The translations under genes and the position numbers were made by a program. A DNA stretch of 32,000 bases. Origin: Wallemia ichthyophaga EXF-994. Taxonomy: Eukaryota; Fungi; Basidiomycota. This document shows positions 4,891 to 30,943 of this stretch, piece after piece (within the stretch, counting starts at the first letter, position 1; each line of letters opens with the position of its first letter). A model generated the notes under the pieces. The model did not search any database and was not told the origin of the DNA. It saw only the letters and a program-made list of their open reading frames with translations. Location: the NCBI RefSeq assembly GCF_000400465.1, contig NW_008806283.1:60001-92000 (forward strand), written 5' to 3'.

Positions 4891-5023
4891 AATCCTGATC
4901 TTTAAACTTGGCACATTGTTCAAACGTATCTGAAAGGAAAAAGGTATTCGATTGAGCAAGTCTATTATTACAATACAAGTCAAATTATATATGGTAACTA
5001 AATTAAGATCGATTAATCATGTG

Positions 5024-8000
5024 CTAGATAGTGATCGCTTCGAATGCCTCGAGGATCCCATCATTGCCTCCAAACTGTTTGAGAAGTTCGTGTGTGATAC
5101 TTTCGGTATCAACGCCATCACCATCCACTACCTCTGTCTTAACTTTAGCCTTCTTGAGTGCGCGATCGAAATCGACGAGCATATCACTGCCCACAACGAT
5201 CTCAAAGTTCAATTTGCGCATTTGTGATCTGAATACGATAGCCAATGTGACGACGAGATCTCCTTCTATCGACACATTAAAGCTGAGTTTGTATACCTGG
5301 GCGAGACGCTTGAACTGAGCGTGCACATTCTTCACGTTCATCCATATGGTCGATATGCGCTGCAAGGTATAGCTGAGCTGAGTGTCCTGTGATATGCCCT
5401 CCTCTGTCAACTGACCACGGAGACAGTCGAGGAGGTATTCCAGCAGAGGGCGCAGCTCGCCTTTCTTTGGGGGAAGCAAGTCCATTTCCACCCCCTGCTG
5501 TGAGATGCTCAGCGCCAACTCATTCGCGTAGTTGAACTTATGCGTCGATTGCGACAGGTGCACAATTTGCCAGCTGTGCAGAATCTGCAGCGATTCATAT
5601 TCGCCTGTGTCGACATGTCAGCAGTGCTACTCTCGCACAAATACCACACTCACGTTTCCGCTTCATGGCTTCCGCTTTCGTAAGGCAGCGCACCATATCC
5701 CACTCTTTTCGATTACTGTCAATGGTGTGTGTGTTTTGAGCCAGAGTCTCTTGCTTCGCCTCGAGGCGTGCTCTGAGACGCGCAAGCTCCTCGTTGTTGG
5801 ATGCTATTTCGGCTTTGTACAGCTCCAGTGGCTGCGCCTGCTCCGCTATAGCCTCGCGCAGACCCTCGACTTCCTCCTTGTCGCAGCTGGCGATATCGCG
5901 CACAATGTCTCTTTCTCTGCGCAGCTCCGTCTCCAGTTTGTCCTTGAGGGCGTGTAGCTGCGGGAGATTCTCACCAAGTGCGCCTCTAGTCTCCTGTAGT
6001 ACCCTGGCATCCTTCTCGAGACCATTGAAGGACTCGTTGAGAGACTCCGCATGACCGCTCACTAGCTCCTTCCTCCAGCCGTACCACACTCGCTTAGCGT
6101 TCAGGCGCGAGTTATTTTTCACGATCTTGAGCTGCGCTTCAATACGCACGCGCATATCCTCACTAGCTAGCAGATAATCAACTATCACTGGCGGATTCTC
6201 GTTATCTACTTCACGTTCGTAGCTGTTGAGTGCCTCTATCCCCTCGCTGATGTAGCGCTTCAGCTCGTGGCAGCACCAATACATCATCTCCAATTTGGGG
6301 CCGGTGACCGCATGTGCGCGCAGATATTCGAGCGAGGATGGCTCGTGCATCGGTGCATTTTCCCCACTTAGACCACCCGGACCCACTGTGGAGCGACGCT
6401 TGATGGTTGAAATCCCATCGAGGAATTTCATGTCGGTGAGTTCGAGGAAATCGTTGAGACTGATTTGCACCGGTGCTTCGACGCTGCTTTCGCCATTGTC
6501 CTCCTGTTCTTCCTCTTGCATTAAACCTTCTATCATCCGCTCTGTTTCGGGGCCTGCTGCAAATTCGTTGCGGATTGGTGGAGCCGGCAGTGGTGAGGGT
6601 GCAGCTTCCGGTTGTGGTGAGGGCTCATGTGTATTCGCAAAGGCCTCCTTCTGTGGCGTCGTCACACTCGACGCTAGCCTTAGTGATTGACGTTTAGGAG
6701 TGCTCATCGGCGAGCCTGGGTTTGAGGCACTGATCGATCTGCGCAGTTTAGATGGTGTCATTTGCTGTGCATGTAGCGAGCGTCTGCGAGTTGGTGTGCC
6801 GCTTTGCTCTTGTTCTGGCGCCGTCTTATCCATGTCCATCGCATCACTTTCGGTTGTAGTATTGCGTCCTTGCTGCGTCACGTTAGTATTCTCCTTCACT
6901 AGTATACAAAACCCACCTCAGCTTCTCTCCTCCTTTGCTCCTCCTTCACGCGCTCCTCTTCAGCTTCGCGCTCGTACTCCCTCTCCCTGTCATTCTTACT
7001 CTGCTCCTCCTGCTCCTTTTCAGTTGCGAGTGTGTCAGGTGTAGCTTCGAGCGCTTGTGTGGAGAGTGCTAGTGAAGATCTTCGTCTTGGTTTGTGTGTG
7101 AGTTTTTCTTTCTCGCCACCTTTCTCAGCTGCAACATCGAGTTTAAGTGGGGAAGGACGAAGTGGCGAGGCGAGCTGAAGACGCTGTACGAGTGGGGACA
7201 TGAGCTTTTCCGTGTTAATTTGGTGTTCCTGTTGCTGTTTATGCTCATAATTTCGTTCCCACTCCAGATCATTGTCTTGCTCTTTCTTCTCTTCTTCGCC
7301 ATCATCCTGTCTCACCTCACCAGCAAAAGACGCTCTCTTCTTGTTAGGACTTTTAGCTGCGTTCTTGAGGGCACTTCTTAGCGGCGAGCTCGTCCCAGCG
7401 CCACCCAAGGCACCTCCGAGACTATGTCTGACGCTTTTCGTTTCTTTTTTCATGAGACTCGATTGAGTGGGCGCTGCGAAGCTGCTGCGTTTCCCTCCTT
7501 TACTTTCAGCATCTGGTGATGAGATGGAGATGGAGGCCTTTTTAGGCGAAGGAGCAGGAGCAGGAGCAGGAGTGAATGATGTGCTACTTTTGAGGGCGCT
7601 CTTGAGTGATGGTCGTGGACCGGCGCCTGCCTTGAGGGGTGACGCTTTAACAGATGGTGCGAAACTGACACGACTGACACGCGGTCCGAGACTTTTCCGC
7701 AGACGACGCGTCTCGTCGTTAACTAGGATACCCTTACCGATTGGCTTGGTTATTTCCATAGTCATCGTCGCGTCTGCGTTGTCGTCAGAGTCACTTGAGT
7801 CACTCGAGTCACTCTCTTCTGGAATGGTGGGGACGTTCATAGGTCCACCGACAGCCTGAGTCATCTCCATTGTCATCGACTCATTCTGCGCAGGGTTGCT
7901 AATTAAGGACATGTCGGCAGTTGATTTTCCGTCATTTGCTGACTCTTGATCGTGCTCTTCCGCTGCCTCGTCACTGCTATCGTTCGTTGCCCCCTTCTCG

Positions 8001-9768
8001 GCTTCCATCAAACCACCGACGGCGCCAGTCATCTCCATGGCCATTGACTCGTTTTCTTGATCATCCTCACTAATACCACTGTCGCTCTCGTTGATATGGT
8101 TCTTTGTCTCATTGACACTCTTCTCGGCCTCCATCAAGCCACCGACGGCGCCGGTCATCTCCATGGCCATAGATTCGTTGTTATGGGTAGTATTACTAGC
8201 TAGTGACATATCAGCAACTGAGTTATTGTCGTGATGGTGGTTATTAGCTTTTTCTCCGTTTTCCTCATGGTCATCTTCCTCTCTCCTCTCTCCACCCAAC
8301 ATACCTCCAACAGCCTGGGTCATTTCCATCGTCATAGACCCGTCGGCTATCTTATGTGCGGTGGAGTCATTGCGATCAATGTGGGTTATAGCAGCTTTGG
8401 TGAGATCCATGTCGTCGTTGCTGTTACTCTTACTGGTATTGCTATCGCTATCATTATCGCTATCACTGCCGTTACCTAAGTGGTGCTGCATTGGTGCAGG
8501 TTCTGGAGGTGGGGGTTGCATTAGCATGTGCTGGTCAGCCTCTTCATCATCACTGCTACTGCTACTGCTGTTATCAACACGTCCGCTGACACTCCTACTA
8601 CCCTCTGGCGAGCCCGAGTTCTGCTTAATGACGCTGCTGCGTCGATCTAGGCTCGATCTTCGTCTGCCTGTTTCGAAGTGAGGTAATTTGGGCACACCGG
8701 CTTGGGACATGGACACGGTGAAGTCCATAGTGGTGTCTGCTTCATCTTCACTGGAGGAGGAGGAGGAGTTCTTCTCGTTATCCTCGTTGTTGTCCACATT
8801 GGTGTTGCCGTCGTTGTCGTTCTTCTCGGATGCTGTGGGTGAGAGAGTGAATTGTGGGAGTTGCATGGGTGGTTGGGGTGGTAATGCAACAGGTTCTGCT
8901 GCTGTGAGTGGAATTGGAGATGATTTATTGCTCTGTGATGATAATCTGGGTGATTTACGCGTAGGCGAATGGGATATAACCTTTTTTGGTAAATTTTGGG
9001 GTGATTTCGGAGACTTGGGTGACTTCTTGGGTGACTTCTTGGGTGACTTCTTGGGTGAGTTTTTTGGCGACTTGTTGTCATCACTCTTACTAAACACGTG
9101 ACCAACAGCCTCAGTAAGATCCATTTGCATAGTATTGTCCTCTGCGTCGTTCGCGTCTTGTGTTGGACCATCATCAGACTCAGTATCAGAGCCATCAAGC
9201 GGTCTTTTTCTCTCAAAAGCTTTCTTAAACGCGTGAGTGACGTCTTGAGTAGCTATGGACATGTCAGAGGTGTCTGAATCTTGGTTTTCTTGTGGGTGAT
9301 GATCCTGTGGATGATGTTGGGATTTTTTAGGGGATGGAGACCTGCGTGGGCTAGAAGAGGCCTGTTTATTGCCCTCTTCATCTTCAAACAAACGTATGAA
9401 GCAATGGCTTGCGAATGAGACTCTGCGACTCGCTTCAGATTTCCTAGGTGCTGCGTGCTTGACAGGATTCTGCGGGAGTTCCTCCTCCTCGTCTGAATCT
9501 GGTGGTGGCTGTGGTTTGAGAATTGAGCGGCGTGGTTTCTAGCGTGTGTGAGTGGTGGTGGTAGATATCAAAGCAAACCACGCACAGCCTTCCTCCTTGC
9601 TAATTTCGTGGGTGTAAGTTCAGCGTCTGAATCTGATTCTTGGTGGTCATCTCCGCTGCCATCTCCGTGGTTACCACCGCTACCACCCAGACTCTTGGAA
9701 CGCAGCTTCCTATTCTCCTTATTTTCCTTGTTGTTTAGATACGTCGTCGACTTTCTACGCGAGTCCAT
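5024..9768 (-). CDS. SPC105: Kinetochore protein Spc7/Spc105 (KNL1), about 1534 aa, 4 exons
   Basis: Introns 9539-9585, 6873-6916 and 5605-5653 join ORFs 9568-9768, 6899-9391, 5595-6899 and 5024-5563 in frame. N-terminal SILK (RRSILK) and RVSF PP1-docking motifs, multiple MELT-like motifs (MDLT, MDFT, MEMT, MEIT), and a C-terminal coiled coil plus globular region. Confidence 0.93.
7994..8179 (-). repeat. Internal 60-nt duplication (period 126 nt) in Spc7 encoding NESMAMEMTGAVGGLMEAEK twice
   Basis: Copies at 7994-8053 and 8120-8179 are identical in protein and differ at a few synonymous sites. Confidence 0.9.
9015..9059 (-). repeat. 12-nt coding tandem repeat (ttgggtgacttc, about 3.7 copies) encoding KSPK/SPKK repeats
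   Basis: Directly visible. S-P-x-K matches the CDK consensus site. Confidence 0.9.
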
Positions 9769-9782
9769 CTCTCTTCGCCTTC

Positions 9783-9793
9783 ACGCGTCGCGT
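9783..9793. promoter_or_regulatory. Overlapping MCB-like elements (ACGCGTCGCGT) just upstream of the Spc7 start
   Basis: ACGCGT plus an overlapping CGCGT 15 nt upstream of the ATG, within the 104-bp gap after the upstream gene's stop codon. Confidence 0.3.
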
Positions 9794-9872
9794 AACGTCG
9801 TCGTTATCGCACAAGGAAAACCGAAATGGAAATTAAAGTAAAAATAATAAAAATAAATACAATTTACTAAAA

Positions 9873-11018
9873 TTAAGACAACGGATCATTAAAAATTTCA
9901 TTCAGTTCATTCATTTGCGGTAGATCATTCGGCATGTTAAAGTCTAAGAATGAGTCGTGGTGTTCTGAAGGTGGTGGTGGTTGAGTGGGTGGATTAGGAG
10001 GGTTACTTGAAGGTGCTGGTGTGTTTCCTGTATTTCCTGTATTTCCTGTATTTCCTGCGTTACCGCTGCTACCAGAATTCCCTATACCTCCTACACCACC
10101 TACACCACTCGCACTCGGCTGCTCCGCGCTGCTTGGAGTGCTGTTATGTTGCTGGTTATCGATATTCGCCAATATCTCACTTGGTGTGATGGCAGGCGAC
10201 TGATTCTCCTGCGATGGCGTCGCTCCTCCGTCGTCGTTATTGAACGATTCATCATCATCCTCCCTGGACCTCCTCTTCTTATTAATCCGCTTGTTCTGTC
10301 TGGTTACGCGCTGCTTGGGCGATTCGTCCGCTGGCGAGTATCCGTTAATTTGTGGCTGGTAGTGTGATGTGTGTTGGGCGTGTTGGGCTTGCTGTTGCTG
10401 TTGCTGAGCTTGTGCCTGCGCTTGTGCCTGTGCATGCGCTTGCACTTGTGCCTGCACTTGTGCATGCTGCAAATGGGGTGATGGTTGTGGATGGTGGCCT
10501 GGCATCGGTGGGGGCGGCATAGACGGCATTCCCATACCCATACCCATCCCCAAATTCACATTCATTCCAGGTCTCATCATTGGCGTGTTGTTTGGGTTCG
10601 GTGTATGCTGGGCATTGTTGTGTGCATTCGGCGTTCCATTTACTCCTCCTGGTCCCCCTGCTCCTCCTGCTCCACTCGCTCCTCCTACGCCCCCGGCATT
10701 TGGATGCCCCGGATATGGCCGTGGCTGTACCCTCTGCTTCATCATGTACTTCTTCTGTGAAATATCATACCGCTGTTGGAGATTATAGTTTATTTCATAG
10801 TAATTCGGTGATCTAAATTGATTTTGATACTGCAGCTCAAGATTTATCATAAACCATTCAAATAGATATGATTTCGGTGTATCTATCTTAACCGTAGGCT
10901 CTGGCAGCGCATTTTGTATCGGCTTCGATTGAGTTTCCGCGAGGAACTGCTGGGCTGTTTTGACTAAATTATTTTTATACAGATAGTCATATATGTAGCC
11001 ATTTAGTTCTTGATTCAT
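9873..11018 (-). CDS. LisH/LUFS-domain transcriptional regulator (Flo8/Mss11/Som1/SSDP-like) with Q/P/G-rich low-complexity tail
   Basis: ELNGYIYDYLYKNNLVKTAQQFLAE (LisH) followed by IDTPKSYLFEWF. First in-frame ATG is at 11018; the ORF track start at 11069 is a TTG. An upstream exon cannot be excluded. Confidence 0.75.
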   Translation of the reverse strand: MNQELNGYIYDYLYKNNLVKTAQQFLAETQSKPIQNALPEPTVKIDTPKSYLFEWFMINLELQYQNQFRSPNYYEINYNLQQRYDISQKKYMMKQRVQPRPYPGHPNAGGVGGASGAGGAGGPGGVNGTPNAHNNAQHTPNPNNTPMMRPGMNVNLGMGMGMGMPSMPPPPMPGHHPQPSPHLQHAQVQAQVQAHAQAQAQAQAQQQQQQAQHAQHTSHYQPQINGYSPADESPKQRVTRQNKRINKKRRSREDDDESFNNDDGGATPSQENQSPAITPSEILANIDNQQHNSTPSSAEQPSASGVGGVGGIGNSGSSGNAGNTGNTGNTGNTPAPSSNPPNPPTQPPPPSEHHDSFLDFNMPNDLPQMNELNEIFNDPLS

Positions 11019-13585: not shown

Positions 13586-15325
13586 TTATACGAGAGAAGA
13601 TGAACGTTCGGTGATGACGAAAGGTTCTGGTGAGATGGGCGAGTTGACGCCTGAGGTGTAATCGAAGAAGGTGGTGTTGGTGTTATTATGACCGCTGAGA
13701 TCCAGTCTCGGTGGGACATGCACACCTCTCCTGACTTCCTCCGCCAGCAGCAGAGTCTCTTCCGTAGAATCAGGCTGCTTGTTGTAACGCGGTGGGCCTT
13801 CCTCATCCTCCACCTGCGTCCCTTCGTCCGTGTACAGCTGGCTATATGCGGGCAACTGTGAGGGTGGAAGGAGACCTTTGCTTTTGAGTAGAGCCAAGCG
13901 CTGCGCTTGCACTTCGAGCATGCTATCGTTCGAGCGTCTGCTGAACCACACCGGTATGGTAATGTCAATGCTCTCCCCCCGCCATTCACCGTCTCCGGGA
14001 ATCTTGCGCACAATATTGAGTATAAGCCGCAGCGCGTGTCTTATTTTTACATACGGCGTCTCGCAGTCAGGGTAAGGGGATGAGGTGGCAGCGTGTGAGT
14101 GTGAATGTGGGTGCTTGTCCGAGTCAGTTTCAGTGTTGTTGTGTAGCTCCTGACCCTTTGTCTGACCTCCCTCACGCTCCCCCTTGGTGGGCATGGGCAA
14201 GGTGAGGGCGATGCGTGCGGTGAGCTTCCCCCCAATATCTACGCCCTCCTCACCGAACGTATGCGTCGCAAAAGCCGCTGTGGCAGGCGGGGGACCTACG
14301 CCACGTGCGACTAGGCGTGAGCGCGTGTAGGATGTGGGGACACTGCTTATCCCAAGCGTGTTAGCTATATCGCTCAGCGCGTGTTCCTGGTATGCGTGAG
14401 CAAACGGGATGAGTGGGTATTGCGGTGGTTGGCATTGTGGGAGCGGGTATGTGGCTAGATAGCGTTGACGTGGTTCTGAAGTGTAGTGTATCTCCTCGAT
14501 GCAGCCAAGTTGGAGACTTTCGAGACGCGCCTGTGTCGCGTGACCATTTCCATTTCCATTTCCACCTGCATTGCGCCTGCTCCCATTATCACCGCTTTCA
14601 CAATTATCGCCCTCCTCATCACTCACAAGCCCCGTAAATATATCCAACTTGAGCTCGTCGTCGTCGGTGAAATACCACATGGGCGTCTTGATCCCAATAC
14701 GCACGGGTTTGAAGTCGCGTGTGTCGTGTGTGGGGCATTGCGACTTTATGTTGTGCACGCGTGAGCGGAGGTGCTGATTGCGGTGGCGGCTGATGAATAT
14801 CTCACACTCAGGCGCGAGCACAGTGTGTTTCTTGATGGAGTTGTTGAGAGGCCAGAGGAGCGAGTTGCGTTTGTTCTCAGCAGCTTCAACGGTGGACTCC
14901 ATCTTTGCGAATAAGGAGTAAGAGGTACGTGAGGATGGCAGGGACATACTTGGTGGCAGCCAGCCATTCAAACGTAGATCAAAGACGACAGAAACGTTGA
15001 TTGGGTGTTCTGAGTCATTCTCGAAAGTGGAAGGCTCGCTGCCCCGCTTAATGATCTGGTCAGAATTGTGAGCTAGGCGGTGAGAACTGAGTCTGCCTTC
15101 AGCATCGCTGTACTGGGAGCAGCCTTGGAAGGTGACAGAGAGCGAGTGTATCCGGAGCTTCTTGCGCTGTAGAGGAGGGATAGAAATGATTATATTGCCA
15201 GAAAGGCTGTACTGCGAGCACGTTCTGGTGGTTCCATGCATGCTGATATGATTCGAATCAGGGATGAGGCTGATATTCATGTTGGGTGGATTGCTTGGGT
15301 TGTTATAATACGAGAACTCATACAT
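13586..15325 (-). CDS. Arrestin-related (alpha-arrestin-like) adaptor with PY motifs
   Basis: N-terminal beta-rich segment (YSLSGNIII...LRIHSLSVTFQG, VVFDLRLNGWLPPS, SYSLFA), PYVKIRHALRL, and motifs PPQY, LPAY and PPRY. The start could be 15325 or the second Met at 15280. Confidence 0.65.
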   Translation of the reverse strand: MYEFSYYNNPSNPPNMNISLIPDSNHISMHGTTRTCSQYSLSGNIIISIPPLQRKKLRIHSLSVTFQGCSQYSDAEGRLSSHRLAHNSDQIIKRGSEPSTFENDSEHPINVSVVFDLRLNGWLPPSMSLPSSRTSYSLFAKMESTVEAAENKRNSLLWPLNNSIKKHTVLAPECEIFISRHRNQHLRSRVHNIKSQCPTHDTRDFKPVRIGIKTPMWYFTDDDELKLDIFTGLVSDEEGDNCESGDNGSRRNAGGNGNGNGHATQARLESLQLGCIEEIHYTSEPRQRYLATYPLPQCQPPQYPLIPFAHAYQEHALSDIANTLGISSVPTSYTRSRLVARGVGPPPATAAFATHTFGEEGVDIGGKLTARIALTLPMPTKGEREGGQTKGQELHNNTETDSDKHPHSHSHAATSSPYPDCETPYVKIRHALRLILNIVRKIPGDGEWRGESIDITIPVWFSRRSNDSMLEVQAQRLALLKSKGLLPPSQLPAYSQLYTDEGTQVEDEEGPPRYNKQPDSTEETLLLAEEVRRGVHVPPRLDLSGHNNTNTTFFDYTSGVNSPISPEPFVITERSSSLV

Positions 15326-16413: not shown

Positions 16414-16707
16414 CTACACGGCTCTTTCTTTCGCTGACATGGCCTGGATTACATGTTAGCTGGTCATAGCTACCGTAAGACAACCCACCTCCATCTTCTC
16501 TCTCTCCTTTCTATTGTGATCCACTTTCCTCTTAAGATCTGGCGACAGCTTGTTGTACAGCTCCTCGTCGCTCGGCGTGAGTCCAACCATCAATCCATAT
16601 CCACTTCCCATGACTTTTGGCAATAAGCAACAAACACACAGCACACAGCTTACCCACTCACTCACGCTACTCCAGAATGCCCAACGTCCCCAAGCTATTT
16701 TAACCAT
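16414..16707 (-). CDS. CBP4: Cytochrome bc1 assembly factor Cbp4-like, about 66 aa, 3 exons
   Basis: Spliced product MVKIAWGRWAFWSSVIMGSGYGLMVGLTPSDEELYNKLSPDLKRKVDHNRKEREKMEAMSAKERAV has one TM segment followed by the TPxxEELxxxxxPDL motif. Confidence 0.7.
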
Positions 16708-16752
16708 TTGAGCGTATCAGATGAGGGTAATTTGTACACGCTATCAAATCAT

Positions 16753-17577
16753 TTATCTTGTTTGTACCTTTGCAAGCTCAACGATTGCAGCTCTAGCGAC
16801 AATATGGTCAAGTAAGCCACTTGGGAGGCCAGAGATGGATACTGCCCCAATTGGTCCAGCCACTCCCTTGATATTGATGGGAAATGAACCACCATCTGCG
16901 CTGAAAGACGGGAACTTATTCTCTGTAAATGCATTCATTGTATTCGTCGCCTTCACTTTCATCTTCTCCTGCGACTCCTTAATACGCAAATTGCGCATGA
17001 CAACACGCCCAGTTGGCCCATCTTCAAACACCACCGATGGGAAAACCGCAGAAATGAGATCTTGCAGCTCCTTCCTCGTCATGACTTTAACGCCTGTAAA
17101 ATTCATAAACTGCTGGTACGCCTCGACAAATTCAGTGAGGGGTACTGCGCTGTCACCGTTGAGATCCTCGCACAGAAGCGCATTGAGATACTCAGTGCTA
17201 CGTGCTGGTTCCGAGTTTATCCCTCTTATCACTCCAATTTCCCCATCGGGAAGTGTGTACCTTCCAACGGCGTGGTGCTTCGCTATCAGCGCTTGTCCGT
17301 AGAGATAAGACGACTGGTGGTATTTCTTGCTGATTGCAAGCTTGCCATTCAGCCAATCGTAGTTGGCTGGCGTCACCTCACCGAGAACCCCAGAAGCCAA
17401 CTCTATCCCGTTGAACAAACGCACCGCAAACACTATCCCACTCCCCTCAAAGTTGAAACTGCGGATCGTGTCGGCGATGAACCACGCATCGACACTGTCG
17501 AATTTGTTCAGCGCTATCTTGTCATCTGCTTTCAGTTGCGCGAGTGTTGGGTTGTATTGCTGCTGCTTTACATTCAT
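16753..17577 (-). CDS. GlcG/HbpS-fold (DUF967/YBR137W-like) protein with an inserted RFX-like winged-helix region; intronless
   Basis: N-half FDSVDAW...NYDWLNGK...SSYLYG and C-half GGSFPINIKGVAGPIGAVSISGLPSGLLDH flank an insert of about 110 aa. Confidence 0.75.
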   Translation of the reverse strand: MNVKQQQYNPTLAQLKADDKIALNKFDSVDAWFIADTIRSFNFEGSGIVFAVRLFNGIELASGVLGEVTPANYDWLNGKLAISKKYHQSSYLYGQALIAKHHAVGRYTLPDGEIGVIRGINSEPARSTEYLNALLCEDLNGDSAVPLTEFVEAYQQFMNFTGVKVMTRKELQDLISAVFPSVVFEDGPTGRVVMRNLRIKESQEKMKVKATNTMNAFTENKFPSFSADGGSFPINIKGVAGPIGAVSISGLPSGLLDHIVARAAIVELAKVQTR

Positions 17578-17672
17578 TGCTGTGGAAAGTGAGTGTGTGG
17601 AGTGATGCGTCTTCTGAGTTTGTGTGTGAGTGTGCGTTATGAACAGGTGATGTGGGCACGTCCACCACTACT

Positions 17673-17683
17673 GATAAGCTATC
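17673..17683. promoter_or_regulatory. Inverted GATA pair (GATA-agc-TATC) about 95 nt upstream of the DUF967 gene
   Basis: Sequence ctGATAAGCTATCg contains TGATAA on one strand and CGATAG on the other. Confidence 0.3.
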
Positions 17684-17756
17684 GTTACCCGAGCAACCCG
17701 ACGAGTGAACCCAACTTAGAAAAAATAAATGAATATCAATTGGCTAACAAAAGTCC

Positions 17757-20700
17757 TTAGTTGTAAACTTGTAATGGATGTAAATGATCGGCATTAAAGA
17801 GGAAATTACCAGACATGTCCTCGGCTATTTGTAATCTCGTTAGCACACATATAATATCTTTATTATCCACTCACTCTCTAAAAACTTGGTAGGGTACACC
17901 ACCAAATTCCCCTTGAGCCGATTAAGCAGCTTCTCCATTGCGTCGATTTCACTCCTCGTATACCCTCCAGATTCAGCCGTCATACTTCCATTACGCATAT
18001 TTCTCCGGCTTCTCTGTGGCTTTTGCGCATGTGTATCGTCTTCCCCATTACTCCCACTACCCGCACTCGTCATCCCATTCAAATACTTAGAAGACGTCCC
18101 GCTGTTTGACCTCTCCATACTCTCCTCCACGATCGGCTTCTTGTGTTTCTCAGCCATCATGCTGAAGTTCTTGAACTGCCTCCAAGTAGTCACCGTATCA
18201 TCTGGCGTGCAATGGAACACTTTGCGATAGATTTCCGTGTTATATATCGCTGAAGCTATCCAAATGTCCTCAAAGAATTCCTCCGAACACGGATCCACAA
18301 AACTATCCTTATCGAAATCTGGTCCTAGGAATGGCATAGAATAGGTATTGCCTCTTGTCAGTGCCTGCGTCGATCTCCTACTGCGGCGCTCGTTCGTTAT
18401 CGCCGAACTAGTAGTACTGAATCCTCTCGACCGAGTCCGCCTCTCAAGGTTACTGCCACCGCTCTTGTCAGCCGCAGATACAGCCTCCCCATTCTCACGT
18501 TTATCCGCTTGGTCCTGCTCCACCTTTTTCGCTATACTCCCATCTTCCGCCATCTCCCCCTTGATTTCGTGATAAGACTTTTTTAGCGCACTCTGCAACC
18601 TGTCTATTGGATCAGTTATTTGCAGATCCTCTGCTGCTACATTAGTAGGGTGTCTGTCGTCCTTTGTATGCACGTGGTCGTGCTCAGGCGCCCAGTAATT
18701 AGTTCCTTCAGTATTTGCGATCCCTGGCGTGTTAGGATCGGTTGGTCCAGCTGGGGGTGCTGAATTTGTTGATTCAGCTGCTGCTGCTTCTGCTGCTCTC
18801 CCCTTAGCCATCTGCTCATTCATATGAAGGTCGTCGACATCAATACCGAGATGCTCTCTCATCAATCTTATTCTCAAAGTGTGATTAAATCTCCCAACTT
18901 TGTACGGTCTGCCAGCCATCTCTGAATCTATCATATCAGTGTCGCGGATAATGGAAGCTAACTCCGAATCTCTGTCACCGCGCTGACTGCGCTCGTTGAT
19001 ATTTGCACTTCCTATTATTGTCAATCGATCATCGACAGTCATCGTCTTGGCGTGAATGTAAAGAATCTCCGAAGTGAGGTTACCTGATTTGAATTTACCC
19101 CAGTTGCGCAAACTGAAGAAGGTTATGTAGTCGTCAGGATCAATACCCTCCTTGCGAAGTCTAGCAAAGATCGATTGTGCACCGCGACAGATGGATCTGT
19201 TCTGACAGTCAACGATCAGTCTTACAGATGAAGCTGCAGGGTTGTCTACCGACTGGGAATAGCCTGGCATGAGAGGAATAATGATACAGGCCCTCCACGT
19301 TGTGTTCTCGCGATGTGCGCGAATGATGCGGTTCACTAAAGCATCCCCAATCTGATTCTCAATCACTGTAGTATCCACAATGGTGGATGTAACAAAGAAT
19401 TGATTTTCGATATAGACAAAGTGTTCACTTTTCTGTATCGCCTTGACGTAGGCATTTTGAATCGAGTGCTCGATCTTATCAGGTGTTCCAATCGACCATG
19501 GTCCACAAGAGCGACATATTTGCATCTCGAGTGTACCATTCATCTTTTGCATTTCGAGATCACGGTTGCTGAGGTCGTTTGGTGGTAACAGGAAGGGAAG
19601 CTCGCGACTGTGGTGCTTTGTTCGCAAAAGATAGTTCCAGCGCTGAATGAAGTGGCGCGAAAGATCACGCGCTGGTTGACCAATAAGCTGCAAGCCCACA
19701 TCATGCCATGGCATGCGAGGCGTAGTGCTTCTATCGAACATATCCTCGTATGGCTTGTTGAGGTCGCGGAAATCAGATACACCTGGTATTGAAATAAGTT
19801 TGACATCAACACCATTTACTTTTCAACTTACGTGCATTCGAGTAGTCTTTTCCTGGCCAGATATATTCATCTCCGTTTTCACCTCCCTCATCGACACAAA
19901 TGTGCTGTGGAGTGTCCCATCTACCGAAACAAAGATCTAAGCCACCCATAAATACCATTGTCTGATCAACTACACATAGCTTTTCGTGGTGCGAGAAGTA
20001 CAATACACCTGTGGTGATATGTGAAGGAGATCTCTGAACCATGATGTTCTCATTCAACGAACGCAGTTTTTGTTTCGTGTAGTTTGAGTCGATAGGCGTA
20101 AACTCATTTGAGACTTCTCTATACACAATAACGTAAATTTTGACGCCTTCTGCTGCTTTCCTTTGAAGGAGATTTGTAAGGGTCCATTTAGGATGACCTG
20201 GCCTGCGCAGCTGCAGCTCAGGCGATAACCACCAATCGTGAATATATATACTTTCCCGGGCTAATGAAACTGCACGAGACAGCTGCCAGAAGTAGTCGCG
20301 TCCATCAATAAGCCATTGTGCACTGACGTTGAGACGAACTGGTGCGAATGAGTCAAATCTGTGAATCTTTGACCATAGTGTGTTATTTTTCATCATCATC
20401 ATGCTCTGGATAAACTGTTCCATTTGTCTTTCGTTTTTTGCTACGAGCTTCATCCTTCTTTCTGCATTGCGGATATAGAATGTGTGTGTTGAGGTATCTT
20501 TAGTCTTGCTCTTTTTCACTTCATTTGAGACGGCGAATTGAGGGTCAGAATCAACGGCATGCTCATTTATATTCTGCTGCTGCTGCTGCTCCAATCTAGC
20601 TTCCTCAACACTATCGTCACGATCATGTTCTTGTGAGCTTGATGGACGTGTTTCAGTGCTCTTCATCGTATCTAACCTGGAATCCTTAGGTTGAGAAACT

Positions 20701-22227
20701 TGGCGTGAGTGAGAGTGACTGTGCAAGTGAGGATGATGGTGCTGAAGGAATGCCTCACCCTCGATAAATGGCGCTCTAATTGCATTAGCTGTTTGTCTGT
20801 AGTATCTTTTTGGCCTTTCGATGGAAAAGTCACTATCAATCAAGAAGACGTCATAAACACTTATTGAATGGGCATCCTCGACGCATACCAAGTAGTCGTC
20901 TCTGACAATCCACCACTTTGGTTCACGCAACTTCTTAATGCTTATCGCCGAAACAATCGATGGTTGTGCAGAGAGTCTACCGCAGTTATTTGACATGATG
21001 CGCAGGTAACCGGCTTTACCTTGACTACCGCCATTCTGGATCAAGCAGACTGTAAGTGCTGAGAACTCAAAGAATCTACAAATGCGGTTGGCGGAGGATG
21101 AGAACATTGTGGCACGGATAAGGTCAATGAGGTAGTTTTGTAATGAATCTCTTTGCATTCTAGCGAAATCCGACTTGGAGAGTTCTTTACCTTTGAGTCT
21201 GCCCTCCCTTTTGAGTAAGTTAAAGTAGGGTAAGCTTGTTTTTGGGAATTCTGGTAAGCCATCCATCGCTCTTCTGACTGAGGCGACGCGGAAGTGGGTA
21301 TGTAGACTAACAAAGTCACGTAGTTCGCGATAAATGGTCCATCTTAGGTTGGAATCACCGTACTGACACTGATAAAGGATGTGAGATGTGTAAATAGGGT
21401 AATTCTTCAAATTAGCGCACCTCAATTCTAAACATAGCGTGAGTGTTGGAGAGTGGATGAACACTATCGCTGACTCTAATTTTTAAGTGATGGAGAAATA
21501 CAGGTATACGTGGAGAGTGATGCTCATCGCGATCGAGAGCCATTTTGAGCATCACAGCGGGTAACATACCATACATGCACTCAGTGACCAAGTCAACTTC
21601 AGCGCCAGTACGTGGTTGTATAGATTTATGACCAATGATCTTTGATTTGATAGCAGCCCAACGGTGCTTACCAGATTTATCATTCTTGTCGTTGTAAGAA
21701 GACCTCCTTGATATCTGGGTGGTAGCATTCTGAAGGCGTGGATAATCTGAGCTGTTTTCCTTCTTTTTCTGGACAGTGTCATCCTGAGACATTGACCTAA
21801 CTTGTGCTTTGTTTTTTTTCTTTTTTGCGGGTTTTGGGGAGGGATCTTCATCCTCCCACTCGCTGGAAGACTCTAAACCGATAGAGGAAGAGCGTGACTG
21901 CTGTGCTGAGTAAACGCCTTTCATTTCATTCTGATTTGGAGCGAACTTTTTAGCGAAAGGGTCGTCTTCTTTACCCGCGAGAGAAGTGGGAGTATCAGGC
22001 ATATTAAGCAAAAGTCTAGCGCGTGGGTTTGGATGCTGCGAGGTGCCTGCGTATGAGCTCATTGAGAGCGTAGGCGAGGGACGTGAGGAGGAAGGACGCG
22101 AGTGTTTTGTAGATTTCATCGGATCCTTTGTATCTAGTGGGGGAAGCGGGGGTGACAGCTTTCCAGAGGACAGCTTCTCTGGCTCTTCGTGTCTGTGGAG
22201 TGTGAGCCCGTCATCGTGCAAATCCAC
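17757..22227 (-). CDS. SPO14: Phospholipase D1 (Spo14/Pld1 type), PX-PH-2xHKD, about 1400 aa; start codon uncertain
   Basis: Introns 21369-21420, 19783-19831 and 17825-17874. Motifs HHEKLCVVD and HAKTMTVD, PRMPWHD, IGSANINERS, and C-terminus NFLFNADHLHPLQVYN. The frame opens at GTG 22227; the first in-frame ATG is 22119. Confidence 0.95.
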
Positions 22228-26400: not shown

Positions 26401-26903
26401 GAACGTAAGCTTGAATTAGTGGAGCGTAACCAAGACCAAAGTTGCCAACAGTGCGTGAGCAAGTGTCTAGCCAGCCGATGTGCTGTTGAATTTCGCGTAA
26501 AGTCTGAGATGACGTCAGACGTGTGTACTGGGAAGGTATAACGAGAGTCCACACGCACAATTGGATGGCCTTCCTGTACGATTTTGTGCACAACGATAAG
26601 AGCTTTGTAAGTTTGAACTTCATCGCTCATAATCGGCTGTACACGTAAACCAGACCAAATGGATTGTGAGGAGTGATAATCCCAAGTGTAAACAATACAT
26701 TCTGCGATAAGAATGATGAGCTCATGATTGTAATCTAAATAATAAAACTAACTTCTAACGTGCTTCTGCTTTGGTGCAGTCTCATCAGTATTCGTTGCTT
26801 TCTTAATATTGAGAGCGAGTTCAGTTTCAGCTTTATCGCGATCAACGGGTCTTGATGGCTGGTGGAAGCTGTCGTGAAATCCCTGCTGCCTTAATCTCGA
26901 CAT
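23403..26903 (-). CDS. SLA2: Endocytic adaptor Sla2/End4 (HIP1R), ANTH - coiled coil - I/LWEQ, about 1063 aa, 7 exons
   Basis: Introns 26702-26752, 26504-26558, 26242-26291, 26005-26056, 25815-25864 and 25125-25175. Motifs KKATNTDETAPKQKHVR and RWTEGLISAAKAVA...LEQLIVASNEVAAATAQLVAASRVKA. Confidence 0.96.
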
Positions 26904-26934
26904 GGTGATGGTGGTTGGTGTCAGCCTAACAACC

Positions 26935-28278
26935 ATGAGTGATTTGGAAATTTCAAGACAAGAAAAGCTGGCGAGGGCCAGAAACCATTTGAAGAAGGCT
27001 CAGTCGAAGAAAAAGCACTCGAGTAGCGCTTCAAGAGACGTTTCTTCGTTATTCACTACAACTCCAACTGATCAGCCAAATTCTCCTTTATTCTCTCCTA
27101 CGCTTGATGAATCTGATAAGACGAGCGATTGGGATGCTTTGCAATCCTCGCTTCAGATTCAATCTGATAAGCAGCTTGACGTGGATCAGGCTGCGGATGA
27201 TTTTGATAAAGGTGATCAAGAGGGTGGATATGATGAGGCGAATGCGGTGGATGGAGTCGATGTAGTGAATTCGAGAGATGCAGGGGATGTGGTTGATACA
27301 GGTAATACAGCCGATACATTCGATACACTCGATAAAGCTGAGGAACCGCACGAGAAACGGGAGAATGCACAAGAATCACCCGAAATGCAACGGCAACAAC
27401 CGCCACTCACAGAAATTTCCTTAGAAGAGCTCAAACAGCAATTAAATGAAGCACACATTGATCATAGCGCGCAAATGAGCGAAAAGAAGAACACAATTGA
27501 TGCACTTGAAAAGACAATCATTGAACTGAAAAGCAACTCTGGAAATAGCGATGAAGTTAATAATTTAGAGAGGAAATTAGATTCAATACAGGCCCAATTA
27601 ATGTCGAACAAGCAATCACACCAAGAAACAAATTCAGCATTGCAACATAGTGAAAATGAGCGTAATCAGCAACGAGAGAATATTGATGCAATTGAGCAAA
27701 AGCTAAGTCATGCTTCGGAGCAGTTGTTGAGGAGTAAATTGGATAACAAGAGTGTTAGAGATGAGGTGGAGAGGGGTAATTCTGAGATTAAATCTTTGAA
27801 GGAGCAACTTAGCGAGCAGCTATCAACAATAAGTAATCTGCAAGAGATGGAAAAGGAGAAAGAGAGGCTATCCACCCTTTCTAGCAATTTGCAAGAGTCA
27901 AACGAATCTCTATCTCACCGTCTTTCACAGTTAGAGGAGGAGAATGCATCTCTAAAGCAAACTATAGAAAAGGACGCAGATAGAAAGAGTATCGAGAGTC
28001 TCGATAAGGGGGCATCAACAATACCATTGAATACTAATGGACACTTTGTCTCAGCAGCTGCACGCTCACTTATACCAAGCAGCGTGATGCATAAGCGTCG
28101 AGAATCGTTGCAGATGCTCAAGATACGTATGGATAGTCACATACAGCCAACACAAATGGACGCCGTCAATGAAGAGAGCCTGCCGCGCAACCAATTTATG
28201 ACCAACGACGACCCACTCTTCTTCTGTGCAGCTTGTGAGAATGAGAATGACGAGGGAGAAGGGTTGATTGTGTTGTAA
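26935..28278 (+). CDS. Golgin-like coiled-coil protein with GM130-like N- and C-terminal signatures, 447 aa
   Basis: Start at MSDLEISRQEKLARARNHLKK in good Kozak context (accATG). Central heptad-rich region. C-terminus PLFFCAACENENDEGEGLIVL. Confidence 0.7.
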   Translation: MSDLEISRQEKLARARNHLKKAQSKKKHSSSASRDVSSLFTTTPTDQPNSPLFSPTLDESDKTSDWDALQSSLQIQSDKQLDVDQAADDFDKGDQEGGYDEANAVDGVDVVNSRDAGDVVDTGNTADTFDTLDKAEEPHEKRENAQESPEMQRQQPPLTEISLEELKQQLNEAHIDHSAQMSEKKNTIDALEKTIIELKSNSGNSDEVNNLERKLDSIQAQLMSNKQSHQETNSALQHSENERNQQRENIDAIEQKLSHASEQLLRSKLDNKSVRDEVERGNSEIKSLKEQLSEQLSTISNLQEMEKEKERLSTLSSNLQESNESLSHRLSQLEEENASLKQTIEKDADRKSIESLDKGASTIPLNTNGHFVSAAARSLIPSSVMHKRRESLQMLKIRMDSHIQPTQMDAVNEESLPRNQFMTNDDPLFFCAACENENDEGEGLIVL

Positions 28279-29996: not shown

Positions 29997-30943
29997 ATGA
30001 CACGAACCAGGAAAATAGACGGCGTTCGTAGTCTGCTGAGCCATCCAGCTTTGCAGTGTGCACCGAAGTCTAGACCTGTTTATCAGCTTAACCAGCTTAA
30101 TCGGGTCAACAACCCCTACTGTTAGTAGTGTTCTAATTCAAAAACCACGCTAAAAACACTCCAGTATCGATGCTAGCTACACCACTGCGCTGGTGTGCTG
30201 TATCCAAGTACAAATACCCCAGTGCGCTACTCCTGCGCTTCAGAGTGGTCCAAGGTGTGCTACAGCTGCGAGACAAGGCGTCCACCAACAATTCAAACTC
30301 ACTCGGTAAAGGAATGAGTGTGCTTTGTCGGCGCAGTGCACTCGAGTGTATGCTAAATGACAAGCTCTGGATGAGGTTATCGCGAAATGCGAGTGTACCT
30401 AGCCATTTCGTACACGCAGTACAATCGCAGCTGGTGGATGGAGTGGTGGCTGAGTTAGATGGCATTCTGCGTAAGCTGCGCAGTAATTGTGTTGAGCCGG
30501 ATCAATCGTTTCAATCGGATCACCCAGCGTGGTTAATGCAGCGTCAGACAATCGCTACAACAAACACAACTTTATTCGTCGGTTTCTATATCACTCTGGC
30601 ATCAACACCAACACACACAGTCCCATTCAGCCGCCTCACTCAAGGAACATACAGCTCACCGATCTACACGTTCAGCGACAAATACGCAGACAAATACCAG
30701 CTAAACGCGATTCGTTATCGTCTGAGCAAATTAGAAGAGCAGCTGCGACGCCGGGGATGCAACACTGGCCAAAACACCTCCGACACGTTTGCATTTGGGT
30801 TCGGCAGAGTGAGTGATGCACACCTGTCCATCGATCTCACCCCTCTCGCCGTGGCGCTGTGGAGATGTAGAATGTGGCATGAGGATGAGCTGGTTTTAGA
30901 GGGTTTTGGGTTGAATAGTGGGGATATTAGGGTGATACGGTAG
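29997..30943 (+). CDS. Conserved fungal protein, tentatively RRG8-like mitochondrial protein, about 300 aa
   Basis: Exon 1 (29997-30120) plus intron 30121-30164 (gttagt...gctaa...cag) joins ORF 30170-30943, creating NPYLSMLATPLRWCAVSKYKYPSALLLRF. C-terminal LAVALWRCRMW. The family call is from recollection of this motif. Confidence 0.55.

Follow-up and report, generated by a model that had tools for sequence, protein, structure and literature searches.

The yeast protein Ybr137w, a member of the UPF0303 family, assembles as a decamer and binds the tetratricopeptide repeat (TPR) domain of Sgt2 through an acidic C-terminal tail, SLEEDLNLD (PMC5641545). In RFX domains, the W1 wing contacts the major groove of DNA and helix 3 (H3) the minor groove (PMC2533330), and DNA binding has been proposed, as a conjecture, for the RFX-like domains of the ARID2/Rsc9 type (bioRxiv 10.1101/2022.05.20.492795; PMC6959994). 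Here we describe a gene at positions 16753..17577 (-) of a 32,000-nucleotide stretch of the Wallemia ichthyophaga EXF-994 genome (contig NW_008806283.1; the whole stretch is hereafter called the window), whose product combines the two folds: a UPF0303 domain split by an insert that is predicted to form an RFX-like winged helix. Although fungi and bacteria commonly encode UPF0303/Ybr137w proteins, to our knowledge the family is still without an assigned biochemical function. Its GlcG/HbpS-fold relatives are oligomeric and bind or sense small ligands; among them, HbpS and EfgA serve as sensors, a precedent for the binding of a small ligand together with signalling to a partner. Neither fold is new in itself; the novelty lies in their arrangement, with a complete RFX-like winged helix inside a GlcG/UPF0303 domain, seen only in Wallemia in these searches. 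No published account of an RFX-like winged helix within a UPF0303 domain was found in the literature searched, in which UPF0303 is scarcely mentioned at all, one such mention being a listing in an expression table.

A UPF0303 domain split by a predicted winged helix

Residues 1-109 and 223-274 of the 274-residue window protein jointly make up a complete UPF0303/Ybr137w (PF03928) domain. The Pfam model PF03928 (HbpS-like) matched in two stretches that lie apart (E 1.4e-11; 45 bits, where the cut-off is 25), as did the NCBIfam PRK02487/UPF0303 models (E 6.5e-18 and weaker); the PRK02487 scores fall under the bacterial equivalog cut-offs, as they likewise do for P0005, a fungal member of the family with no insert. 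An exhaustive phmmer search of 1.84 billion representative sequences with the window protein returned 48 proteins, four of them with the same extra segment, two of them spurious repeat proteins, and the rest UPF0303 proteins of ~120-230 residues, mostly ~160-190. The nearest relatives without the insert belong to the basidiomycetes Acaromyces, Parajaminaea, Auricularia, Cryptotrichosporon and Naganishia. When the protein is aligned with 40 UPF0303 relatives of ~160-190 residues, ~105-113 residues (about 110-222) are left over in the window protein and four relatives, and these lie between the helix that ends near residue 101 and the 'HGGxFPI' strand. The domain, usually a single unit of ~160-190 residues, is thus not contiguous here, being split by ~113 residues. 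The first-pass annotation, made from the letters and translations of this DNA, had described DUF967/GlcG-type halves separated by an insert; all four of the peptide stretches that it quoted are present in the translation of the open reading frame (ORF), and its division of the domain is borne out by the split Pfam match, by the alignment gap in the relatives and by the likeness of the modelled core to the Ybr137w structure, 4CLC.

That structure was not reached by direct phmmer of the window protein against Protein Data Bank (PDB) sequences, and the link to it runs through the family profile and the fold. The UPF0303 family profile matched 4CLC in one contiguous alignment (E 1.7e-29), in keeping with the earlier statement that yeast Ybr137w has no such insert. 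With the AlphaFold2 model of the window protein as query, the first five Foldseek matches in the PDB were five 4CLC chains (E 2.4e-6 to 2.6e-5; template modelling (TM) score, normalised to the target, 0.71-0.75), the alignment spanning the insert, and the flanks thus model as the GlcG/Ybr137w fold that had been proposed. HbpS, of the same superfamily, took ranks 6-8 (E about 1e-3, TM (target) 0.54-0.62). The modelled core consists of helices at 12-18, 28-39, 70-86 and 90-101 and strands at 48-54 and 59-65 in its N-terminal part, and of strands at 231-236 and 242-249 and a helix at 254-273 in its C-terminal part, which bears the conserved motifs 'GGSFPI' and 'SGLPxxxxDH'. A31, W75, K79, S89, S90, G229, G230, P233, G244, G250, D257 and H258 are all present; over 45-49 aligned sequences, each of these columns is either invariant or conserved to at least 90%. 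Since all of the family-conserved residues are retained, the insertion has probably left the core undisturbed and in its ancestral ligand-binding or oligomeric role. The C-terminus, ...IVELAKVQTR, has no acidic tail of the Ybr137w type.

The fold of the insert comes from an AlphaFold2 model built on a 49-sequence alignment, with a predicted local distance difference test score (pLDDT) of 94.3 (88-96 over the insert), a predicted TM score (pTM) of 0.87, and four of the five models at 94 or above. A single-sequence model (pLDDT 32) was unusable save for its secondary-structure pattern, which in the insert is the same helix-helix-helix-strand-strand. Residues 123-199 follow the order of elements of a winged helix, H1-S1-H2-H3-S2-W1-S3. 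Directly after the core matches, Foldseek placed the DNA-binding domain of RFX1 on its X-box (1dp7_P, rank 9; E 6.9e-3, probability 1.00, TM (target) 0.85, root-mean-square deviation (rmsd) 1.6 Å, 76 of 76 residues) and RFX5 (8zjr_M, rank 10; E 7.7e-3, TM (target) 0.78, rmsd 1.8 Å). Among the matches listed, these two are the best outside the core and stand ahead of all other winged helices, the next of which have E-values at least 10-fold worse (a viral PrimPol, 0.067; a manganese uptake regulator, 0.15; MukBEF chains; Cdc6/Orc1, 0.19). The RFX match was placed on residues 123-200 by inference from the topology and from the hhalign register given below. The identification of the insert as RFX-like, made at first sight, thus agrees with the modelled fold, and neither of the two structural predictions of the first-pass annotation, for the flanks and for the insert, was refuted by the models; no chain of Rsc9, the comparison offered at that stage, is among the 50 Foldseek matches listed.

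At the level of sequence the relation to RFX is faint. The Pfam model of the RFX domain, PF02257, was silent at E <= 10 for the whole protein and for five isolated inserts, and the five inserts gave nothing significant in Pfam (the Cdc6_C winged helix at E 0.065 and EF-hand_7 at E 0.008 were both below cut-off). Profile alignment with hhalign scored the insert at a probability of 49% (P 1.7e-4) against an RFX1/RFX5/ARID2 alignment and at 19% (P 1.2e-3) against an 18-sequence RFX family. These alignments cover 43-48 columns, with residues 137-186 set against RFX positions 11-58, in a register that agrees with the secondary structure (P146/P18, Y154/Y26, F179/F51), and when extended by hand the alignment pairs 'NLRIK' of the insert with 'GLRIK' of RFX1. 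In a column-shuffle control, the observed hhalign score of 23-24 compared with 10 +/- 2 (maximum 18) after shuffling, and none of 90 shuffles per target reached it. This is modest evidence, and a shared origin of the winged helix with an RFX-family domain is likely, not proven. The insert profile had no significant match among PDB sequences; its best hit there, the PadR-type regulator 1xma (E 0.34), was set aside because the beta hairpin of the insert was aligned to helices of that protein.

The insert is real coding sequence under purifying selection equal to that on the core. Against the W. hederae-type orthologue on a metagenome contig (L001), protein identity is 62% in the insert and 69% overall, and this selection follows from a proportion of nonsynonymous differences (pN) that is alike in the insert (about 0.23) and the flanks (0.16-0.23) while synonymous sites (pS about 0.76-0.77) are saturated. 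The return linker at 201-222 is conserved, with the motif 'EKxKxxxTxxMxxxTENKFP', and no intron lies within the insert region of the window gene.

Six insert-bearing copies were found, in four Wallemia-type genomes: one each in W. ichthyophaga and W. hederae, and two in tandem in each of two further genomes, one of 40% GC content (L003/L004) and one of 28% (L002). All six sit at a common locus, which reads phospholipase D (PLD), one or two insert-bearing copies, CBP4 and a convergent Cdc42, with 94-97% identity of Cdc42 between the syntenic loci. No insert-bearing protein was found outside this syntenic Wallemia-type locus in the exhaustive phmmer search or in a word-indexed homologue search with a five-sequence profile, which returned no further members. 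The tandem paralogues (L003:4001-6103 and L002:2-1619, against the single copy in W. ichthyophaga) have strongly diverged in the winged helix, with 25-26% identity within the insert; the initiator methionine and the N-terminus are conserved in all copies. Two long proteins were considered as relatives of the insert and rejected, their scores being inflated by repeats: P0012 (1392 residues; aBig_2, LRR and SLH repeats) and P0027 (1112 residues; low-complexity repeats) owe their E-values on the insert region, about 1e-5 to 1e-7, purely to summed repeat matches.

Possible roles of the inserted winged helix

In 17 canonical RFX domains (RFX1, RFX5 and 15 others), the helix-3 motif 'FGKxIR' and the wing motif 'RRLGxRGxSKYHYYG' hardly vary. 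At these places the insert has 'LQDLIS' and 'VVFEDGPTGRVVMRN', respectively, and a wing that is three residues shorter. The window protein has D173 and S176 where RFX helix 3 has K45 and R48, and V183, E185 and D186 where RFX has R55, R57 and R58. The winged helix of the window protein has a net charge of -4 and an isoelectric point of 4.66, compared with net charges of +3 to +12 in the 17 canonical domains, and it is net negative in five of the six Wallemia copies. Because the basic wing and helix-3 residues are replaced, the wing is shorter and the domain is acidic, the insert probably does not bind DNA in the manner of RFX.

The reading we favour, tentatively and at slightly less than an even chance, is that the protein is a ligand-binding UPF0303 core on which a degenerate RFX-like winged helix is displayed as a module for docking a partner. 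According to this reading, a module of ~113 residues would have been inserted, in the Wallemia lineage, into the UPF0303 surface loop that leads from the third core helix to the 'HGGxFPI' strand. Its centre would be an RFX-type winged helix, probably derived from an RFX-family domain, which would then have lost the basic residues of the wing and of helix 3 that serve DNA binding and turned acidic. The core would keep its ancestral ligand-binding or oligomerising role, and the grafted winged helix would offer a docking surface to another macromolecule, most likely a protein, and so would replace the Sgt2-binding acidic tail of Ybr137w that is absent here. Homology to RFX, the role in protein docking and the retained function of the core are each inferences of ours, at the strength that the evidence above lends them. 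If the reading is right, the partner of the winged helix would point to the pathway that the UPF0303 core serves.

Several points weigh against this reading. The partner that it supposes is hypothetical, the fold of the winged helix is predicted and not solved, and the insert is represented in only ~9 of the aligned sequences. Its sequence relation to RFX is weak, as the hhalign probabilities and the silence of PF02257 indicate, and the likeness may reflect convergence on the fold. One of the six copies, copy B at L003, has a basic winged helix (net charge +4) with a 'GKRK' wing, and all copies keep the 'N-h-R-h-K' pattern of the last strand, which in RFX1 reads GLRIK; judged from these two features, some binding of nucleic acid is possible. 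Winged helices can, moreover, bind DNA through surfaces that RFX1 does not use.

The insert might instead be a structural or oligomerisation element only, engaging neither an external partner nor nucleic acid, which alters the assembly of the UPF0303 subunits or stabilises them, for example at low water activity. The pTM of the model suggests that the winged helix is packed on the core in a fixed orientation, the lead-in helix and the return linker equal the core in conservation, and Ybr137w forms a decamer (PMC5641545), in the assembly of which loops on the surface could play a part. The restriction of the architecture to Wallemia is a further point in favour. Members of this genus are among the most xerophilic and halophilic of fungi, and the restriction invites a link to low water activity, although nothing here shows such a link. 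A full, independently folding domain of ~78 residues under purifying selection is, however, much to spend on a mere strap, and the strong divergence of the paralogues on the winged-helix surface looks more like changing specificity than like fixed packing. We consider a purely structural role unlikely, if far from negligible.

Distinctly unlikely is the proposal of the first-pass annotation that the protein is a one-component regulator, its GlcG-type core sensing heme or another small ligand and its RFX-like winged helix binding DNA or chromatin. Structurally the insert is closest to two bona fide RFX domains on DNA, 'NLRIK' matches 'GLRIK' of RFX1, one paralogue has the basic wing just described, and HbpS and EfgA, established sensors of the GlcG fold, are both among the Foldseek matches. 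Against these stand the failure of PF02257 to detect the insert, the absence and partial charge reversal of the wing and helix-3 signatures, which leaves the basic positions neutral or acidic, and the acidity of five of the six copies; no obvious nuclear localisation signal was seen when the window protein was read by eye. The residues thus lend the proposal no support in the form in which it was made. Lower still do we place a version in which the winged helix binds nucleic acid, either by a surface other than the canonical one or in the paralogue with the basic wing, and in which it is coupled allosterically to ligand occupancy of the core. If this improbable version were true, Wallemia would have invented, by domain insertion, a eukaryotic single-polypeptide ligand sensor and DNA or chromatin binder, and the Ybr137w family would gain its first functional handle.

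It is very improbable that the architecture is an artefact of gene modelling, with the ORF forming the C-terminal part of the upstream PLD or the insert being an unspliced in-frame intron, since, for all that fused 1766-residue PLD-ORF-CBP4 models exist in several W. ichthyophaga strains and GT...AG sites are present in the 262-bp spacer, the PLD ORF has its own stop codon at 17840, the fused model also takes in CBP4 of an unrelated family, stand-alone entries of 274 and (W. hederae) 275 residues are on record, the initiator methionine is conserved, and the insert is conserved as protein over saturated synonymous sites, folds confidently and is free of the true introns of the orthologues, which lie elsewhere.

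The gene and its surroundings

The DNA of the window is fungal and nuclear, and the phospholipase D encoded next to the gene is the W. ichthyophaga EXF-994 protein EOR00657.1. The gene itself is an intron-less, stand-alone gene, and its features are collected in Table 1. An identical 274-residue protein is already in NCBI and UniRef as a stand-alone entry, and the W. hederae orthologue, TIA88116.1, is likewise annotated on its own.

Table 1. Coordinates of the split UPF0303 gene and its parts (window positions; residues of the window protein)
Feature	Position	Strand	Residues	Basis
Whole coding sequence of the UPF0303 protein with RFX-like insert	16753..17577	(-)	274 codons + stop	ORF list, ATG to stop
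N-terminal part of UPF0303/Ybr137w (GlcG/HbpS-like) domain	17251..17577	(-)	1-109	First Pfam/NCBIfam stretch, conserved residues, AlphaFold2 model
Insert (lead-in helix 111-118, predicted winged helix, return linker 201-222)	16912..17250	(-)	110-222	Gap in no-insert relatives, pLDDT, pN/pS
Predicted RFX-type winged-helix core	16978..17211	(-)	123-200	Foldseek, hhalign, shuffle control
C-terminal part of UPF0303 domain	16753..16911	(-)	223-274 + stop	Best Pfam stretch (209-265), conserved residues, model
Predicted helices of the insert			lead-in 111-118; H1 123-134; H2 147-160; H3 168-178; 202-205; 210-217	AlphaFold2 model
Predicted strands of the insert			135-137; 144-146; 183-186; 192-195; 197-199	AlphaFold2 model

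Introns are present in some orthologues and not in others, and the window gene has none; where they occur, the automatic gene calls P0001, P0002 and P0004 end prematurely. A short intron follows 'GPIG' in the W. hederae-type orthologue (L001, 764-820), and the same intron is probably present in both copies at L003 (at ~4740 and ~6100), because the gene calls stop there and the 276-residue P0062 continues beyond. In the upstream copy at L002 (135-295), two introns bracket a small exon that encodes the linker following the winged helix.

In several other W. ichthyophaga strains, TIA70455.1 (1766 residues, 'phospholipase D1') and like models merge the PLD gene, the UPF0303 gene and the CBP4 ORF by way of predicted introns. 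The merged model P0072 spans 16456-21464 (-) of the window. Such models probably arise from the over-merging of adjacent genes in a very gene-dense genome, in which only 262 bp separate PLD from the UPF0303 gene. The small ORF directly downstream of the UPF0303 gene, at 16456-16707 (-), matches CBP4 (PF07960, E 2.3e-7), and its N-terminus, MVKIAWGRW..., is also kept at L002. Judging from the L002 counterpart and from P0072, the CBP4 gene is likely to be interrupted by introns, which the plain ORF call missed. The strand opposite the UPF0303 gene carries two long antisense ORFs, at 16721-17302 (+) (193 residues) and 17062-17592 (+) (176 residues), which are taken to be chance ORFs.

The genes around the UPF0303 gene are ordinary housekeeping genes, for Spc7/KNL1, a LisH protein, a subtilase, the PX-domain phospholipase D, CBP4, a Cdc42-type GTPase, an I/LWEQ (Sla2-type) protein and a 14-3-3 protein; none of these neighbouring window genes suggests a functional link to the UPF0303 gene. 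The Spc7/KNL1 kinetochore gene, with MELT repeats, lies at 5595-9391 (-), and around it, from ~5000 to 11000, GC content is raised to 0.46-0.53 and the AT skew of the plus strand is strongly negative (-0.16 to -0.35). Three long ORFs had no Pfam match at E <= 1e-5, at 13586-15325 (-) (579 residues), 26902-28278 (+) (458 residues) and 30170-30943 (+) (257 residues).

Comparison with known systems

Ybr137w is the nearest counterpart of the core. The joined flanks of the Wallemia protein belong to the same fold and family and keep the W, K, SS, GG-x-x-P, G, G and DH positions, and both proteins are small, fungal and probably cytosolic, with no biochemical activity assigned. Ybr137w, however, is a contiguous domain of 179 residues with no insert, whereas the Wallemia protein carries 113 extra residues, and where the yeast protein ends in SLEEDLNLD the Wallemia protein ends in AKVQTR, the Sgt2-binding tail being gone. 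The bacterial GlcG/HbpS-like proteins, among them HbpS, the C-terminal domain of PduO and EfgA, share the superfamily fold (Foldseek 4bmw, 3fpv, 5cx7 and 6bws; PF03928) but are single contiguous domains of 10-15% identity.

The insert compares most directly with RFX1 (1DP7) and RFX5 (8ZJR), the predicted fold superposing on the whole 76-residue RFX1 domain. The weak in-register likeness in sequence to RFX lies in a proline that precedes H2, in the patterns Y-x-x-Y within H2 and h-x-x-x-I-x-x-x-F-P following H3, and in h-R-h-K of the final strand. The setting is different, as RFX domains belong to transcription factors with dimerisation domains and the insert is embedded in another domain.

The degenerate RFX-like domain of ARID2, the human counterpart of yeast Rsc9, is the nearest analogue of the insert. 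It has a charge of +1 and scores marginally against RFX1 (E 0.24), it keeps 'VFP' after H3, and its wing starts 'VKRVED...' where the insert has 'VVFED...'; unlike the insert, it retains K and R in helix 3. In ARID2 and Rsc9, moreover, the RFX-like domain sits in a large armadillo-repeat scaffold subunit of a chromatin remodeller (SWI/SNF). The Wallemia protein would offer a natural example of domain insertion, in which an RFX-type winged helix was grafted into a surface loop and then lost its DNA-binding signature, with a bearing on the re-use of transcription-factor domains as modules of other proteins, of which ARID2 and Rsc9 are further cases.

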